Part shown: positions 1 to 9,232 of the stretch, piece after piece
How positions within the stretch are numbered: the first letter of the stretch is position 1
How the letters are laid out: the number at the start of each line of letters is the position of its first letter
From: Bugula neritina
Taxonomy: Eukaryota; Animalia; Bryozoa
Assembly: GCA_964035545.1 (NCBI GenBank)
Contig: CAXIUT010000288.1
Coordinates: 1 to 9,232, forward strand
DNA length: 9,232 bases
Direction: 5' to 3'
Translations under genes and position numbers: made by a program
Notes under the pieces: model-generated
The model's database searches: none
What the model was told of the DNA's origin: nothing
What the model saw: the letters and a program-made list of their open reading frames with translations, nothing else

Positions 1-87
1 CCCAACCCCAACCCCAACCCCAACCCCAACCCCAACCCCAACCCCAACCCCAACCCCAACCCCAACCCCAACCCCAACCCCAACCCC
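1..87 (-). repeat. Left telomere, (CCCCAA)n
   Basis: Perfect C4A2 hexamer array from the first base, followed by AT-rich subtelomeric DNA. Same repeat as Tetrahymena (TTGGGG). Confidence 0.98.
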
Positions 88-195
88 ATAAATAAAATCT
101 CATATTTTTTTCTAATATTCACACAATAAAAGTCATTTTCGAATATGAAATCATAGATAATTTATTACAGATTGATATTAAACAAAACATAGAAG

Positions 196-822
196 TCATA
201 TCTATTTCCATTTCTTACTAAATAATTTTTTCTATAATTATCCAATCTTCTTCCTAGCATTATCCAAATCTTTTTCCATAGATTTCTTATCTTTCCTCAA
301 CTTCTGGCATTGAATCTCGTAGTTTTCACATACTTTGGTTGTTCTTTTGAGGATTTAGCTGAAAGTTGGTGGAATCCAGCTCGATTGATCCATGTTGTTC
401 GTGCTGAACTGTTGGCTATTATTTCTGAGAAATTCTTCAGGGAGGAGAGGCTAGGGGTGCGGTAGATTCAAAGATTGCATCATAATTATTTTTTATTTAC
501 CGCATCTCCCTTTTCTTACACTTTTTGAAGATATCTTATCACAGAGAGTTCTGTTGTCATTTTTATCTTTTTTGCTGCTGCTTCTTGATTTCTTGGTGCT
601 TTGTTGTCTGCTTCTTTTTTGTTTGGAATGGGTGGTCTGTGTGAGCATTTTTTATTCTAGTTTGTGGGGAAGGAAAACTCGTTTGGTGGTGAGGATAGCT
701 TGTTTATAGTTGCTGTGAGATTGATTGCCTCGAATAGAGGTGCTTCTTGCGTGTTTGAACATTTTAAAGGGAGGAGAGGTCGATTCTTTAATTGAAATAT
801 TGCTGATCGTGTTGCGCTTCAT
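196..822 (-). CDS. Hypothetical protein, 208 aa, basic Ser/Lys-rich N-half and probable C-terminal coiled coil
   Basis: ATG at 822 to TGA at 196-198, uninterrupted with TAR=Glu: MKRNTISNISIKESTSPPFK...CENYEIQCQKLRKDKKSMEKDLDNARKKIGELEKKLFSKKWKEI*. More GC-rich than the AT-rich flanks. No family recognised. Confidence 0.75.
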
Positions 823-951
823 TGATTTATCAATAATAATATTGAAGTCTAAATCCTAAATTAAATCATCAAAGTTTTATTTTAAGATAAGAGTTAATGC
901 TTAAGTTTAAAGTTATTATTTGTAAATTAATTAATATTAGACAATTGAGAA

Positions 952-1569
952 ATGTTTGACTACAATTCAATGATGGCGTTGAAGGAACTTGTGGCTGGAG
1001 AAGAGGAAGATCCAGATATGGTGGAAAATCCTTATAAGGGAAGTATGCTTAATCCTGGGCAGATAGGATAGGATGGCGAGAAGAAGGAAGTTGCAAAACC
1101 TCATGCTAAAATTGAAGCTAAAATTGGATAAAAATTTCAACCTAAAATGAAAAAATAAACAGTATAAGAACCAAAGAAACCAGCAGTAGATCCAAAACAC
1201 TAAATCTGGAGTGAGGCTGAAGTGGCAGATTTACCAGTGATAAAGCATGACCCTCGTAAGCAACCAGTCTTCGATTCTTTATACCGTCAGAAAGTGGGCA
1301 CTGAAGATATCTTTCTGGGCATAAATGGATCAGATCCTTCATCTAACTGTTGCCAGTAGATTACTTACAAGATCTAGTTGCCTGGAGCTGCGATGAAGGA
1401 TATTCAAATAGATTTGAATGAGAAGCAGATGGTGGTGCAGACTAAATAATTTTATTTGGTTCAGTATTTCCAGTATAAGACGGATCCTAAACAGACAAAA
1501 GCGAAGTTTATATCGGATAAGGGGATATTGGAATTGGTGATACCAATTTTGAGGAGTGATGATTTGTGA
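952..1569 (+). CDS. DNAAF6: Dynein axonemal assembly factor 6 (PIH1D3/Twister) homolog, 205 aa
   Basis: Intronless ATG-TGA ORF containing IWSEAEV...LYRQKVGTEDIFLGINGSDPSSNCCQEITYKIELPGAAMKDIQIDL... This matches the PIH1D3 signature as I recall it (RQxVGTEDIFLG...CCxELxxKIxLP...DIQID), followed by a C-terminal CS/HSP20-like segment (AKFISDKGILELVIPI). Confidence 0.92.
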
Positions 1570-1703
1570 CCTAAAGATATATTGTTCATCAGATATTCAA
1601 ATTATTATTTGATCATTTATACTACTACAATTATACTATTTCTATTATTTTGATTTTTAATGATACTACAAAATCCAATTCATAATACGTTATTTCGATA
1701 TAA

Positions 1704-2411
1704 ATGAACGATCTCTTCACTTTCAATTCAAGTCAGTTCCAAGCAATCAATCATCCACCTGTTCTACCACCTACTGTTCGTAGAAGAGTTATTAGAACTG
1801 TTTCAGGTAAAAGATAGTTATCACCATTGACGAATCCATCAACTTGTTCTGATAATCATAAATCTAATTAAAAAATTGGCAAAAAAGTCAGCTTTAAAGA
1901 GATCCAGAAAAGCAAATAACACAGTTTTGAAGAGTTAGGGAGTAAAATGAAAAGTATGTAAGATGGAATCGAGATGAAGGAGGAACGATTGACTCAAAGT
2001 ATGCATAAGTAGAGTCAACCTGCCATGAGAAACAAACCTTCTATTGATGAAGGGTTGGAGTAGAAGGGTTTAGATCAGGATGTAGTTCTTTTGAAGATGA
2101 TTCAGACTGAGGAAGAATGTGATAGACGACCTCGCTCAAAAAAAATGAAATCTGTAAAATTGACTCCTAAAGTTATTTGTCCTTTATCTGATCGTAAATT
2201 ACCAAAGGCTTTTAAAAATAACAATGTTAGTACTTTTTTGCCTCCAATTAACAGTTCAGGAAACAAAGGTAGCAAATAAATAAGAACAGATGAACGAGTA
2301 AAAACAAGGGTTCTTATGCATTGTTAGAATGAACTAGCGAAGAGAAGTCAGTATATGCAAGAAGTTGAGTTCCTAAAATGTCAAAGACATTCTTATACTC
2401 CAAAAATATGA
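1704..2411 (+). CDS. Hypothetical protein, 235 aa, Lys/Ser-rich, probably largely disordered
   Basis: ATG 1704 to TGA 2409-2411 in one frame with TAR=Glu (MNDLFTFNSSQFQAINHPPVLPPTVRRRVIR...EVEFLKCQRHSYTPKI*). Contains the track ORF 2091-2279 in frame. Flanked by AT-rich spacers. Confidence 0.75.
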
Positions 2412-2492
2412 CATATTTTGATTTAATTTACTTCATCCTAAATCTTAAAATATTAATCATATAAATGGAATAAAAGATTATAATAATCATGG

Positions 2493-4073
2493 TCATTCTA
2501 ATCCAAAGTGATTGTTTTAAACTGATAAGTAGACGATATATTTATCGAACGTTTATTTATCTGGATAGACTGGTAGTTCTAATCGATTGAAGCAGGTATG
2601 ACTTTTAGGATAGGGTTCAATTGAATTATATGTGACTTGTTTTATTTAAAAAAGTTGAAATTATCCTCGATTGCTCTATAGATATTTGAATCCTTGAAGT
2701 GGAACTCTAGTATTTCCTGTAACAAAGTTCAACATATTTTATAACTGTTCTTGATCCAAAGAATCGAGGTACTCCCAGAACCACTCGATAACAATATCTG
2801 TGGGTTCGTATCCTGTATATTTTATGTTTTGTTTGAGATCGGAGAGATCGATTTTTGATTTGCCGTTGATGATCATATCTAGTTCTTGTGGCTAGAATAC
2901 TGAGAGTAAATCATGGGGGATGATTTTGTAGATGCCGTATCTGAGGTTAACTATCATTTTTATTACTGATGATGTGCAGTAGTGTTTTATTCTTAATTAA
3001 TAAATTATGTACAGAAGTTGGATATACTATGATACGTTTGAGGAGTTGACCATGATATCGAAGCCATTTTATTTTAGTGGGATTGTCAGTTGGGTGCCGT
3101 GTTAGTCGAATTCATAAACACAGAAGTTTTGGGTCAGATCTGTTACTCTTACATCTTTTTATTTGTTTTATTTTGCTTGGTCAAGCATGTAGTTCCATCC
3201 TCTGTAAAACTATCCTCAATAAAAGAATACATCAGCATCGAATGAAAAGATATCATTCATTTGTATGGATTGACTGCAAATTTGTCTGAGTATCGTATAA
3301 TTAAGAAAACACTTCAAAGGTATTTTTTAAAATATGGCCTTCCCGATAACTATTCCTAATATTTTGGCAGCAACCTCAAAAAGTTACTTAACTTGCTCGT
3401 TGAAATTGAATTTATAAAATGTGCCAGAAGTGTGGCAAAGTGACAAAATTCCCAATTCTGGATTAAAAATCTATCTGATGCAGAGAGTCATCCATGATCT
3501 GAGTAGTCCTCCGGCATCTAGGGTATCGGCTGCATCTAGGAATTATATTTTGACTTATTTGTGGAAGTTTATTTTTTAGAATTGTGAGTTGCTGGACATG
3601 AGTATGTTGTTTCTATCGACTTTGAGGACATCTGATAGTTCTTTGTGGAATGGAATTCTATGCTTTTCTAAATTGATTCTGAACCAGATATATTTCTATT
3701 GAAAGCTACGAGTTTTTATAAATTTTGATTATTATTTACCGATCTAGCGTACTATTCTGTATTTGGGCTGACGAGTCCATTAGAACTATGTCCAAGTTTT
3801 GAAGTCTTTTGGGGTCTACATCATGTATTTATTACTTTTAGCTCAAAACTTTCATTAGGGACTTATACTATTTTGCCTTTAGTTAGTTTTGGGTTGTTTA
3901 TTGTAGGAACTGTTTCTGCTTTGAGTGTTGGATTTAAAATTGGTCTAAGATTGTTTATTTTGTGTTGATCTGCATTTATATCTGAGGGTATTGATAGTTT
4001 TACTGCTGAAGGTTTTGGTTGCTTCTCCTCCTGTATTTCTTGGAGGGGTATCATTTGAGCAACAGGTTCCCAT
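2493..4073 (-). CDS. HECT-domain E3 ubiquitin ligase, about 498 aa, four inferred introns (3982-4003, 3816-3835, 3210-3230, 2992-3012)
   Basis: HECT motifs: KVDRNNIL, EVKIEF...DAGGLLRSW, REIFNPELG, GKAIFE, VFEPQELDMIING, IEWFWEYL, LNFVTGNTRVPLQGF, and PKSHTCFNRLELP with the catalytic Cys codon at 2592-2594. Ends in FGLE* (TGA 2493-2495). The N-terminus MGTCCS joins the domain frame through two tiny GT-AG introns. Confidence 0.93.
2992..3012 (-). other. Inferred 21-nt intron (HECT intron 4)
   Basis: GTACATAATTTATTAATTAAG; AT-rich, 3n, no in-frame TGA. Removal gives NVSEYIQLLIKHY, which fits HECT spacing better. Confidence 0.6.
3210..3230 (-). other. Inferred 21-nt intron (HECT intron 3)
   Basis: GTATTCTTTTATTGAGGATAG carries an in-frame TGA inside the HECT domain. 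Removal gives SFDAD-FYRGWNYML. Confidence 0.88.
3816..3835 (-). other. Inferred 20-nt intron (HECT intron 2)
   Basis: GTAATAAATACATGATGTAG carries an in-frame TGA. Removal links the upstream frame (ESFELK) to the HECT frame (TPKDFKTW). Confidence 0.75.
3982..4003 (-). other. Inferred 22-nt intron (HECT intron 1)
   Basis: GTAAAACTATCAATACCCTCAG. Removal joins the MGTCCS...KTFS frame to the NINADQHK frame. Without it the gene would start at ATG 4054. Confidence 0.65.
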
Positions 4074-4479
4074 TTCTATGAAGGATTTAATATTATATAT
4101 CAAGGATAAAAAAGTTGATAAATAGATGTTAGCGTTTGATGATTAATTGTTCTAGATAAGTTTTTAGATCATATATTTGTTAATAAATATTGATATATGG
4201 TTCTATCTTGCAATAATATTTAATTTTATTGAAAAGTTAATGTTAACTATCAAATATTGATTATGCTAAACTTAATTTATATTCAAAGTGTTTCAAGGAT
4301 ATTAGCAGGCTAGTAAGACAACTAGCCTTTCTACAGTCAAATAAACAACCACAGAATATGATCATTTACATAGTAGTATAGATAGTTATTTTCTAATTAT
4401 TCATAAATATAAAATAAAATATATAAAATTAAAATACGTTAATTAATAATTTTTAATTAGATAAAATAAAGAGTCAAAT

Positions 4480-6427
4480 TCAGCATAATCTCTTGATTCC
4501 TGGAATTGGCAATGAGGCTTCAATAGCAAAACTTTTAGGCACAATTTTTGCCAATACTATTGAATCTTCACCACTCTAGCATATAACTTTGAATTGTCCG
4601 CGACCTCTATTCGGAGTCAGCAACTAAAAATTATTATCCTAGTATTACTCTTCATTAAAAGTCAAACCCAATTTTACTTTAGCTGTTGGTCCTATATGCG
4701 TAACGGTATATGCATATCCAGAATCGTAGATGATATCCATGCAGACCCACACATCAGTTTTCCCAAATATTCTTTGTTGATTTTATTTGTTGTTTCTGGC
4801 ATGATCTAGAAACATTCTATTGAGAAATTCTTCTTGGTTGAGGTTGGGTAGCTGAGTCATTTGTATGGCAGATGAGCAGTAGCAACTCAAAGTGGCCTCT
4901 TATGATGATTAGCGACCTGCCAATGATGAAAAGATGACATATTCTCCTGGATTCAGTTCGACTTATAAATTAACGTCGCAGTGGTTGCGGACTGATAGAG
5001 TTTAGACATAGCGATAGTCGTCTCCTTTGTAGTTGGATATTTTCTATGCGAGGATGATGGTTGAAGTGGCATATCTCGGTTCTGGTACTTCTATTCCTCT
5101 TGTATTTTATTGGGTCAATGCGATGGTAGCTTCGCCTCCTTTTGCTGATAGTTCTGTATAAATTGGTGTTGCTTTGGGATATGTGATCTATTCGTAGTAG
5201 TAGTTGGAGTGGTCGTCTATTTTGGCGATGTTGACTAATTGGAAATAATATAAAAATTATTACCAGAACATGAAGAAGATGCCATCGTTTTTATTGCTGT
5301 AGCCTAGTCGTTTTTTATCCATGCTTGATACTGATGACCAGAAATTGTGATCTTTGTCTGAGGCGCCTCCTCGCCACTATTTCTATCCCCAAGGATTTCT
5401 TATTTTTACTAGTTGTCTTGGCCTGTCGAATACACTTAGCTGATTTAAAGATGAACTACCACTGTATAGGCATGTGCTTCTACCAAATTCATCTATTAAA
5501 CCTATGGGTTGACATATGTTCCGCAGCAGATGACCCAATCTCGACGTTATGCTTCTATCATAGTTGAAAACAATTAGTTTGTTTAAGATTCGCTGCCATT
5601 TGTGAGATACTGGAAGGTAGGAGCAGCGCTATAGGCGTGAAGGACTTAATTAGGTAATCCACCTGAATGAACAAAGAAGTACCATCGATGGCTTAGTATG
5701 ATCCGTAGAGTTTGGCCCAGCATTTTTATAGAATCATCACCCATATCTACTATCCCTTTGCTGGGTTGGCTCCCATGATGTTGTGATCGTATTTGCTTAC
5801 AGGAAAATAATCATCGATGACTACTTCTTGATAGACTCCTTTGTGTAGAATTCTGCACATGTAGATGCCGTTTTTATTGACTTATAGACTGGGGAAGATA
5901 GTTTTGATTCTGTAATCTTTTTATGCTAGTCCAGCTATGGCACTCAGGAAGTAGCAGTCGCCGATTCTTCCTTGGAGGATGTCTGAGGGGTCGATGGACC
6001 CTCCGCCGATAAAAACAGGATTTTTTAGAATTTGATCTATTCTTTTCCAAATAACTTTCTCTGTGGTTCTTCCGAGTCCAAATGATCGTTGCTAGGGCGG
6101 GAAGTCAGGATCTGTCCATTTTTTATTGGTTGATGAATACTATTAGAGAAGTATTTGATAATTAGATTTTAGTACTTTTTTCATGACGAATTCTTAAAAT
6201 TCTGAGTTATGTGTTTTGATGAAGTTGAGGACATTATCAAGTTTTTTATGTTTTTGTCCGTTGTCTTTTTTACTCATTCGATCTATGACTCTTGATTTTG
6301 GTCCTGGATGGAACCCTTTGAGAACTATGTCTTTTTATTGGTTCAGTTATGAAAGTGAACTTGACATTTGGAAGATTTATAAGGCGTAGTCTCCTTTTTT
6401 TGGAGTTGTTTAGCAGCAAAAAAACAT
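4480..6427 (-). CDS. Calpain-family (peptidase C2, CysPc) cysteine protease, about 635 aa, two introns (5663-5682, 5440-5459)
   Basis: WTDPDFPP, WKR, DILQGRIGDCYFLSAIAGLAE (catalytic Cys codon 5954-5956), VVIDDYFP, EIWVMILEKCWAKLYGSYEAIDGG, HAYTVL (His), KIRNPWGEKEWRG (Asn), DGIFFMFWEEF. A later LNPGEYVIF resembles calpain domain III. ATG 6427, TGA 4480-4482. Confidence 0.95.
5440..5459 (-). other. 20-nt intron (calpain intron 2)
   Basis: GTAGTTCATCTTTAAATCAG. Removal is needed to connect HAYTV to LSVF...RNPWG in frame. Confidence 0.9.
5663..5682 (-). other. 20-nt intron (calpain intron 1)
   Basis: GTACTTCTTTGTTCATTCAG. Removal restores the conserved SYEAIDGG-LP motif and the reading frame. 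Confidence 0.92.
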
Positions 6428-6505
6428 TGATTATTTTTTGATTAGGGAAATATAAAATATTTTGAAAGCTGTTTTATCAAATAGTATGTTATAATATTAC
6501 TGGTA

Positions 6506-6600
6506 GGGGTTGGGGTTGGGGTTGGGGTTGGGGTTGGGGTTGGGGTTGGGGTTGGGGGTTGGGGTTGGGGTTGGGGTTGGGGTTGGGGTTGGGGTTGGGG
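6506..6600 (+). repeat. Internal telomeric tract (GGGGTT)n, 95 nt
   Basis: G4T2 array with one G5 unit at 6554-6558, oriented like a right chromosome end. No C4A2 partner follows it; the next base is the A of ATG 6601. Confidence 0.97.
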
Positions 6601-7485
6601 ATGGATATCTAAAGTCAAAAATACTATTCAGCTCTCTATGACCGAATTCTTTCTGAATTGGATCTATATCATATCATACCAGCATTGAAAGAATCACAAT
6701 AAAGAGCTCTCAGAAAAATAAATTGGGAATATATTAAACTAACTTTAAAAACAAGGAATCATAAATTTTATAAAAAAAATCCTTTCGATTGTGCTTTAAT
6801 GATATCGAAAGTATCTGGTCCAGTTCTCGCAAAATTAGTGCCTTTTCTTCTTTAATACGAGACCTTTATCAAATGTTTCTATATCTGGGACATCAATATG
6901 AACAAATAATTTTTTATAGAACTTAAAAAAAGTAGAAAACTAACAGGTCTTTTTTTTATAAATTGTAATATTGGAAATAGCTTAGCTCATAAACTTTTAT
7001 AAGCTCCTTTATAAAAACTTAAAAGTTTGTCTCTTACTAATGATCCAATAGATAACAAAGGGTTTAAACATTTGATGAAAGTTAGCTGTTCTTTTTTATC
7101 GACCTTAGAAATGAAAAGTACTAAATTGACAAGTGATAGTCTTAAACTTTGGCAAAAAAAATTAAGATATTAAAATCTATATGGAGTATCTTTATATTCA
7201 AGGAAAAAACAGTTTAATCATTGTCTTTTAATGAAATCTTTAACGCACTTTATTGACTTTAATCAAATAGGCTTGATATAAGTTGAACTAAGAGATGGTT
7301 TTCAAGAGGCTCCTTTTCTTTACTTAAACTATCTAGCTAAAATAAAAAATAGTCCCGATTAACTGACTTAATTTAAGATATTTATTAACGAAAGAGGATA
7401 ATAAAAGAGAGAAGAATTACCTTTTCTGAAAGAAAATAACTAAAATAATGTTCTGAAAAGAGCATTTGAGATTGTAACTTATTGA
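6601..7485 (+). CDS. Leucine-rich-repeat-like protein, paralog 1, 294 aa
   Basis: Uninterrupted ATG-TGA ORF with TAR=Glu (MDIESQKYYSALYDRILSELDLYHIIPALKE...). About three 26-aa units resemble RNI-like LRRs: LTGLFFINCNIGNSLAHKLLEAPLEK / LKSLSLTNDPIDNKGFKHLMKVSCSF / LSTLEMKSTKLTSDSLKLW. Collinear with paralog 2 along its whole length. Confidence 0.8.
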
Positions 7486-7711
7486 ATGATACTTTGATGT
7501 TTTATCTATTATTATGATTTATTTTTTAAAAGAAAGGATTTATTTACATTGTTTTATAATATTTTAGAAAAATTTGTTAACTCTTAATTGATTTAACAAT
7601 AACTTTTTAAATTAATTATTTTTGATGGTTAAAAGTTGAAGGATAAAAGTTATTTTGATGTACTATTTATGTTATAATAAATTTATTTTTTTTGAAGAAT
7701 ATTACTAGTGA

Positions 7712-8597
7712 ATGGATATTTAAAGTAAAATTTATTTTCTCGATCAACAAAGTCGATTATATTCTAAATGGGATCTTTACAATATCTTACCAGTTTTGAA
7801 AGAACCATAATAGATAGCTTTAAGTAAAATAAACAAATAAAATATTATAACAGCTCTGAAGTTGAAAAATTATTAATTTTGCAAAAAAGTACCTCAATAC
7901 AGTGAATATATAATAGTATCAAAAGTATCAAGTCCAGTTTTATCAAAACTAGTGCCTCTTATCCTTAAATACAATATACTCGTCGAAAATATTTAGATAT
8001 GGGACACAAATATCGGTTAATAATTTTTTATTGCTATCAAAGAGTGGTAGAACACCAAAAAGTTATGTTTTTACATGTTGTAATCTCGGAGATAACTTAG
8101 TTTATAAACTTCTTAAGAATCCTTTAGAAAACCTTAACAATTTGTTTGTTTTTTGTGATCCCATTAGTAATAAAGGATTTAAACAGTTGATGAAGATTAG
8201 CTGCCCAAATTTAAATGGCTTGTAGATGAAAAGTACTAACTTAACAATCGATAGTGTTAAACTTTGGCAGAAAATAAGATATGGGAAAAAGATTTGTTCT
8301 ATAGGATTTTTTTCAAAGAAGAAGCAGTTTAACCATTCTATATTTCTTAAATCATTAAATCATTTCATTGATTTTGATGAAGTAAATTTATTAATGATTG
8401 ATTTATGTCTGGGTTTTCGAGATTCTCCTTTTGTTTACTTAAACTATTTAGCTAAAATAAAAAATTCTATGAGTTTTACTCCTGAATTGTCGATTGTTCT
8501 TAATGAGGCGTGGCAGTAAAGGAGAGAATAATTACTTTTTATTTCAGGAGAAATACATAATAATCTTTCAAAGGCATACAATATTTATATTGATTGA
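7712..8597 (+). pseudogene. LRR-like paralog 2 with a one-base (+1) frameshift near 8068-8072 (pseudogene or sequencing error)
   Basis: Starts MDIESKIYF like paralog 1. Homology continues in the +1 frame (CCNLGDNL...KGFKQLMK...YLNYLAKIKNS...TGA 8595-8597). Span is 886 nt (3n+1), and the start frame hits TGA at 8156-8158. Confidence 0.65.
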
Positions 8598-8661: not shown

Positions 8662-9045
8662 TCACTTAAGTAAATTAAGTTCTCTTCTTTATGCCCTTTT
8701 CTGCCTCTACTGCTCCTTCAAAAACACATAATCATCAATCTACCTTTATCGCTACAACCGGGCTAGCTTCATTCTTGTATTTTCCATCTCTTCCTCAATC
8801 ACACTGTTCAACTTTTCTAGTCTAGCTAGCTAACTTTTTTCAATCTCAATAGCTTAGGCTATTCTAGAACCAAATCTGTGATTTTCAATCAATTGCTCAA
8901 CAGGTAAATTACGACTTATACTGTAGGTAGAAGGCAATATAACTGACTGACTCCTAAATTAGGAAGACCATGTTGAGGAAGTGATGTTAAGTTCTATCTT
9001 CTTGCAAAATGACTACTTTACATTTTAATTATTGACTGATTGCAT
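8662..9045 (-). CDS. Hypothetical protein, 127 aa, Glu/Arg-rich C-terminal coiled coil
   Basis: ATG 9045 to TGA 8662-8664: MQSVNNENVKESFCKK...IAEAIEIEKSELARLEKLNSVIEEEMENTRMKLARLEREREIDDYVFLKEQERQKRAERRELNLLK*. Purine-rich coding strand with AT-rich flanks. Confidence 0.72.
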
Positions 9046-9140
9046 TGATCAAGAGCTAATATAGTAAACTATGATATTATTATAAATAATTATAATAATT
9101 CAATTGACTCTAATCATCAATATTTAAATTATTGGAAATA

Positions 9141-9232
9141 GGGGTTGGGGTTGGGGTTGGGGTTGGGGTTGGGGTTGGGGTTGGGGTTGGGGTTGGGGTT
9201 GGGGTTGGGGTTGGGTTGGGGTTGGGGTTGGG
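9141..9232 (+). repeat. Right telomere, (GGGGTT)n
   Basis: G4T2 array to the last base, with one G3 unit at 9213-9215. Confidence 0.98.

Follow-up and report, generated by a model that had tools for sequence, protein, structure and literature searches.

The window (the whole stretch of DNA analysed here, 9232 nt with an overall GC content of 32.5%) is a ciliate macronuclear chromosome, small and complete in appearance, that is bounded by telomeres of the Tetrahymena/Paramecium type. Its features are collected in Table 1. The open reading frames are sensible only if TAA and TAG are read as glutamine and TGA as stop. Genes are separated by spacers of 64-380 nt with a GC content of 0.14-0.20, and neither tRNA genes nor members of Rfam families are present in the window. 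It holds no human or viral sequence and codes for no toxin. At its two termini (positions 1-9 and 9224-9232) the telomeric repeats are found in equal phase, 5'-CCCAACCCC... and ...GGGGTTGGG-3'. This agreement, which has a chance of 1 in 6, may indicate a defined C-strand end and not an arbitrary truncation.

Table 1. Genes, telomeric tracts and leaders of the 9232-nt window (positions in nt)
Feature	Position	Strand	Remarks
Left terminal C4A2 tract	1-88	+	88 nt; inverted relative to both G4T2 tracts
Gene A	about 241-855	-	
Gene B	952-1569	+	
Gene C	1704-2411	+	
HECT ubiquitin ligase	2493 to about 4080	-	PF00632
Calpain-family cysteine protease	4480-6427	-	PF00648; tiny introns; divergent to LRR1
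AT-rich spacer	6428-6505	.	78 nt, GC 0.19; from calpain ATG to tract
LRR1 leader	6485-6505	.	Last ~21 nt of the spacer, ending in TA; aligned to paralog leader
Internal G4T2 tract	6506-6600	+	95 nt, G-strand on +, as at the right-hand end
"LRR1"	6601-7485	+	Intact 294-codon ORF (TAA/TAG = Gln, TGA = stop); LRR-like by eye
LRR2 leader	7668-7711	+	Proxy "empty site": TATGTTATAAT, ~19-22 extra nt, AATATTACTAGTGA, then ATG at 7712
"LRR2"	7712-8597	+	Tandem paralog of LRR1; open over 294 codons except for one +1 frame change
Gene H	8662-9045	-	ATG at 9045
Right terminal G4T2 tract	9141-9232	+	92 nt; one GGGTT variant unit (9213-9217)

The calpain assignment, made in a preliminary description of this DNA from the sequence, is supported by a match to Pfam PF00648 (E = 1.3e-11). 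The gene starts with the ATG at 6427 and its amino terminus, MFFCC, is common to its relatives. Two tiny GT...AG introns were delimited on the minus strand: one of 20 nt in the calpain gene (about 5663-5682) and one of 21 nt in the HECT gene (3210-3230), whose removal takes an in-frame TGA out of the HECT domain. The frame changes of the calpain gene are identified as tiny introns because related metagenome contigs have them at the same places of the protein. Their coincidence with the positions found in relatives also rules out a noisy single read as the source of the window. The HECT and calpain genes are separated by a spacer (4100-4479) of 380 nt, compared to 64-226 nt for the other spacers, which is very AT-rich, carries short repeats of the ATAAA type and has no match to RNA families or tRNA.

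Database searches were carried out with stop-free protein pieces, the ciliate code being applied for the in-house translations only. The calpain piece retrieved fragments at 52-90% identity and full-length matches at 70-80%. Related ciliate contigs (L004-L013 and L027-L029; GC 34-46%), which come from metagenomes of lakes and other sources, carry calpain genes at about 65-67% DNA identity, and many of them keep the calpain-to-HECT order found at 2493-6427 of the window. One of these contigs has a length of 172 kb. None of these contigs has a homolog of LRR1 or LRR2 or a telomere tract. Since they lack the LRR pair, what adjoins calpain on its right is specific to the lineage of the window, and the contigs are of no use as an empty site. 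Genes A, B, C and H also have no counterpart on them.

LRR1 and LRR2 align end to end with 48% amino-acid identity. Their dN/dS is about 0.5 and their dS about 0.73, so that the duplication is old. The label "LRR" of the preliminary description was not confirmed by comparison to profiles: no stop-free piece of LRR1 or LRR2 is matched by a Pfam profile, and the name reflects only the look of the repeats. The frame change of LRR2 lies somewhere in 8026-8050, probably in the A-run at 8039-8041, and reflects a pseudogene of recent origin or else a homopolymer error. GC3 is 0.20-0.24 in the two paralogs versus 0.27-0.42 in the other genes. This low GC3 and the frame change of LRR2 are compatible with weakly expressed or dispensable genes, which is only a hint. 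The pair is without detectable relatives among 1.84 billion representative proteins, where a phmmer search with the LRR2 piece gave a single match, to an unrelated repeat protein encoded in a eukaryote genome. An exact look-up of the largest stop-free piece of LRR2 (97 aa) in an assembly index gave no record. The amino-terminal piece of LRR1, compared to JGI metagenome contigs by a protein-guided search, yielded only two weak matches of 28 residues, which are irrelevant as they lie on contigs with a GC content of 39-40% and without telomeres.

A telomeric tract lies inside this gene array, immediately in front of LRR1. The preliminary description had placed a G4T2 tract of 95 nt before an ATG within the locus, and this is what is found at 6506-6600. 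Its count of about 16 repeats was close, the exact make-up being 15 full units plus GGGG in the orientation of the right terminal tract: eight perfect GGGGTT units, one GGGGGTT (6554-6560), six more GGGGTT and the final GGGG. With up to one mismatch allowed, a scan of the window found 41 copies of the 12-mer GGGGTTGGGGTT, all of them in the three telomeric tracts, versus 0.05 expected from shuffles. With its 95 nt, the internal tract is as long as the true ends (88 and 92 nt), as had been claimed, except that the left end had been given 87 nt; the 92 nt given for the right end are correct. The order at the junction is ...TATGTTATAATATTACTGGTA, tract, ATGGATATC..., and the tract is followed by a further 2.6 kb of sequence whose first base is the A of the LRR1 ATG. 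The earlier statement that no C4A2 follows on the right side holds as well, a 12-mer scan (up to one mismatch) having found no match in this orientation near 6600. Homopolymer-length anomalies number three in the 9.2 kb, namely the G5 unit of the internal tract, the G3 unit of the right tract and the +1 shift of LRR2. They are compatible with a long-read consensus, which they may reflect without proving it. The rest of the window is clean, and its intron positions are conserved in relatives.

The sequence to the left of the tract was compared to the leader of the paralog. TATGTTATAAT is found at two places only in the window, 6485 and 7668, and so is AATATTACT, at 6493 and 7698. The last 14 nt of the left flank (AATATTACTGGT-A) differ from the 14 nt that immediately precede the LRR2 ATG (AATATTACTAGTGA) by one mismatch and one gap of 1 nt. 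The score of this junction-anchored alignment is equalled at about 8 of roughly 17,900 other positions and strands of the window and in 5 of 3000 shuffles. The homology of the left flank to the paralog leader, proposed earlier, is thus borne out by both the alignment and the unique shared words. The LRR1 leader corresponds to the LRR2 leader minus about 20 nt. On the right side, the LRR1 ATG directly follows the tract and the alignment of LRR1 to LRR2 starts at the ATG of LRR2 itself. Removal of the tract in silico restores a leader and ATG with at most one base missing, taking the LRR2 leader as reference. Note that the "empty site" used here is a paralog leader, neither an allele nor an ortholog. 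Because the left flank is homologous to this leader, the flanks of the tract are contiguous DNA of one locus as far as the paralog can show. Of the earlier notion of a nearly lossless developmental break, the small loss (about one base at most) stands and the word developmental is interpretation: telomerase healing of a vegetative break, insertion in the germline or an artefact of consensus building fits equally well. Calpain, with its ATG at 6427, and LRR1 are divergent genes that would have 78 nt in common, and the tract parts LRR1 from this region, in agreement with the proposal that LRR1 is split from its promoter.

The contiguity of the flanks bears on explanations that join two molecules. 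Since a complete chromosome runs from C4A2 to G4T2 whichever strand is read, a junction of two complete chromosomes needs G4T2 followed by C4A2 together with unrelated flanks; neither is observed and this candidate is discarded. A chimera between species is also out, as genetic code and spacer GC agree across the tract and the GC of gene H matches too. A chimera made in vitro is a further possibility, in which a telomere-ended molecule of 6.6 kb was ligated or template-switched to another fragment while the library was prepared or the whole genome was amplified. Such events are the usual account of telomeres embedded in long reads (PMC6937825), and a fragmented genome is rich in chromosome ends. 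Here, however, the partner must begin at the exact base that continues the left flank, for which the random chance is about one over the genome length. A complete second chromosome should have added a C4A2 tract, which is missing, no microhomology was found that could steer template switching to 6601, and base composition is the same to the left and to the right, like the code and the spacer GC. We therefore consider a chimera made in vitro improbable. The preliminary description had reasoned soundly that one-sided repeats between contiguous flanks do not come from a random chimera, which is very unlikely.

The left side of the tract has the appearance of a chromosome end. Segment 1-6600 carries inverted telomeres, the C4A2 of 88 nt and the G4T2 of 95 nt, and the calpain ATG lies 78 nt from the tract, much as the gene H ATG lies 95 nt from the telomere on the right. 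The calpain side of the tract thus has the architecture of the true right end, and by its sequence segment 1-6600 looks like a complete chromosome. The right side is un-end-like, for a telomere placed there would abut the ATG and leave no leader. The dinucleotide TA precedes the telomere at all three junctions (87-90, 6504-6506 and 9139-9141), which read ...TATTTA/T-GGGG on the left (read outward), ...CTGGTA/GGGG at the internal tract and ...GGAAATA/GGGG on the right. TA amounts to 0.16 of the spacer dinucleotides. Its presence at all junctions may point to a TA-linked rule of cutting or telomere addition in this ciliate. A Cbs-like 15-mer (up to three mismatches), the element of Tetrahymena-type breakage, is not found near the site; as Cbs is removed from macronuclear DNA, this negative carries little weight.

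Judged on these features, the tract most likely marks a second chromosome end in use at this position. In our reading, an internal, alternative site of telomere addition that would serve the calpain side is located here, following the TA at 6504-6505 and at position -1 of LRR1. There is, in our judgement, about an even chance that the 95 nt were written into the sequence when a capped isoform of 6.6 kb was merged with the uncut isoform of 9.2 kb by consensus building or assembly. The locus would then occur in these two forms, the short one consisting of 1-6505 plus a telomere and carrying genes A, B, C, HECT and calpain, and the long one carrying these genes plus LRR1, LRR2 and gene H. The short form would outnumber the uncut form, and its telomere tails would part from the latter precisely where the telomere was added. 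During the correction of reads, the building of a consensus or the merging of contigs, these tails would be kept as an insertion instead of being clipped, with the outcome that the telomere of the short form would be written into the long form as an insertion of 95 nt. We infer here the existence of the short isoform, that of spanning molecules devoid of the tract, and a join made by software.

Several features of the junction are accommodated by such a merging of isoforms. A telomere that abuts an ATG without leader and the lack of C4A2 fit a site serving the calpain side only. A base-exact, lossless insertion is expected where two isoforms are merged at their point of divergence, and a tract with the length of real telomeres is expected if it is the tail of true telomere-ended molecules. 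The G5 unit near the centre of the tract, on the other hand, would fit a fixed genomic sequence equally well. Internal telomere-addition sites and the isoforms that result from them are frequent in ciliates (PMC3558436; PMC6937825; PMC13076228). In corrected long reads of Oxytricha embedded telomeres were met and filtered as artefacts (PMC6937825), and the "multitelomere contigs" of this organism were put down to alternative fragmentation or to internal telomere-like repeats (PMC3558436). A long-read consensus, with which the three homopolymer-length anomalies are compatible, is where artefacts with embedded telomeres have been reported (PMC6937825), and to this extent the anomalies count for merging. 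Against merging, we cannot name a mainstream assembler that does so by design, and local aligners clip tails that do not align. The type of data behind the contig is also relevant. In a de Bruijn graph, chromosome ends all enter the G4T2 repeat node and none exit it in that orientation, and this hub is not left into unique sequence unless reads hold GGGG-ATGGATATC. If the contig was built from short reads, merging therefore cannot account for the tract, which must then exist physically.

The main alternative is that the tract is a real interstitial telomere. Telomerase would have extended the 3' end on the calpain side of a break or nick, and the tract would have been ligated to the distal end, unhealed and still tethered. 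This could have taken place in the developing or the vegetative macronucleus, or once in the germline with subsequent inheritance, and its product would be a single chromosome of 9.2 kb with a tract of 95 bp in the 5' leader of LRR1. A contig assembled from short reads through a de Bruijn graph would speak for this explanation, as it would require reads that span the junction. A one-sided tract between contiguous flanks with at most 1 nt lost is the signature of repair insertions mediated by telomerase, and the tract is nearly pure, like young insertions, next to paralogs that are old (dS about 0.73). Ciliate macronuclei do heal breaks by an active telomerase (PMC13076228). Raw DNA ends were joined beside telomeric repeats in Paramecium, the repeats becoming internal (Katinka & Bourgain 1992, as reported in PMC9543784). 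On the other side, the healing of one end and not the other followed by exact rejoining is a rare chain of events, and a simple repair insertion does not explain a tract of mature-telomere length. To our knowledge this chain has no description at an endogenous ciliate locus. The register of the repeats at the break is mixed: when CTGGTA is compared to GGGGTT, the GGT at -4 to -2 fits, though the last base of the left flank is A and not T. Register with the repeat is not required for de novo telomere addition in ciliates.

The real-telomere explanation also has no independent molecule on its side in the collections that were searched. None of the public collections examined holds a second copy of the locus. 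Exact 21-24-mers of both flanks have no match in IMG/VR, and the left-flank 21-mer, the one scanned against a prokaryote genome collection, gave there seven chance matches of 21-24 nt. Other one-sided G4T2 tracts in IMG/VR are only short coding repeats on phage-like contigs with a GC content of 42-66%. Taking both sides together, a real interstitial telomere is plausible but the less probable reading, the mundane merging of isoforms being slightly ahead. Both had been put forward in the preliminary description, and both are kinds of event that are already known.

Two further explanations were considered. The tract could be made reproducibly in vivo, the locus being cut after TA at -1 of LRR1 whenever a macronucleus develops, the calpain side capped by telomerase and some copies then re-ligated to the raw distal end; we regard this as unlikely. 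It could also be the remnant of a germline element of the Tel-1 or TBE type that was excised imprecisely between leader and ATG. Elements bounded by telomeric repeats are on record for Tetrahymena and Oxytricha, to the extent that they are cited in PMC7285179 and PMC3558436, and the site follows a TA. There is, however, one internal tract only, with no second inverted tract or element sequence beside it, and the flanks are otherwise intact. TBE ends carry telomeric repeats of 17 nt, and the 95-nt tract is far longer. A germline remnant is accordingly the least probable of the explanations given here, and very unlikely.

The locus shares features with several systems. It is like the alternative telomere-addition isoforms of Oxytricha and Paramecium in that a telomere lies between genes inside a longer version of the chromosome. 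In those systems the shorter capped isoform keeps whole genes with short leaders, and assemblies show the extra telomere (PMC3558436; PMC6937825). It differs from them in that the tract is one-sided and found within continuous sequence, with distal DNA again from the very next base, and in that the site abuts an ATG, leaving the distal gene without leader; the isoforms proposed for the present locus are deduced. A second likeness is to the interstitial telomeric sequences (ITS) inserted by telomerase in mammals, which have one orientation, contiguous flanks and little change at the break and are pure when young (PMC2246262). Unlike in these cases (PMC2246262), the empty site is represented here by a paralog, the last base is off register and the tract is as long as a mature telomere. 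A ciliate somatic nucleus, unlike the mammalian situation, is rebuilt in each sexual generation, and the event could for this reason be somatic. In the integration of injected DNA in Paramecium (Katinka & Bourgain 1992, as far as it is presented in PMC9543784) a raw end was also found beside repeats that became internal. The molecules were foreign and integrated at many sites according to that account, whereas the partner here is the distal continuation of the locus itself. Neotelomeres of Paramecium likewise are de novo, non-terminal telomeres on broken somatic chromosomes (PMC13076228). Healing there ends the chromosome and rejoining is not described (PMC13076228). Note that the repeats of the window are pure G4T2, in contrast to the mixture of G4T2 and G3T3 in P. 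tetraurelia.

On either of the two main readings LRR1 is parted from the 78 nt upstream: it would be wholly cut off on the short form, or would lie behind a G-rich repeat of 95 nt. If the tract is the boundary of merged isoforms, as we favour, it is a base-exact flag of an alternative chromosome end and illustrates how these can be written wrongly when fragmented ciliate genomes are assembled. If it is made reproducibly in vivo, LRR1 would be uncoupled from the 78-bp promoter region common with calpain, and the tract could later seed breakage, providing a built-in switch between chromosomes of 9.2 kb and 6.6 kb. If single molecules carry it, the tract would be the record of a somatic or germline break that was healed by telomerase on one side and then rejoined. 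Such an intermediate between fragmentation and end joining was shown for injected Paramecium DNA and is inferred for mammalian interstitial repeats; we know of no demonstration at an endogenous ciliate locus. Single molecules with the tract would also offer a natural test of the effect of a telomere on the gene directly behind it.
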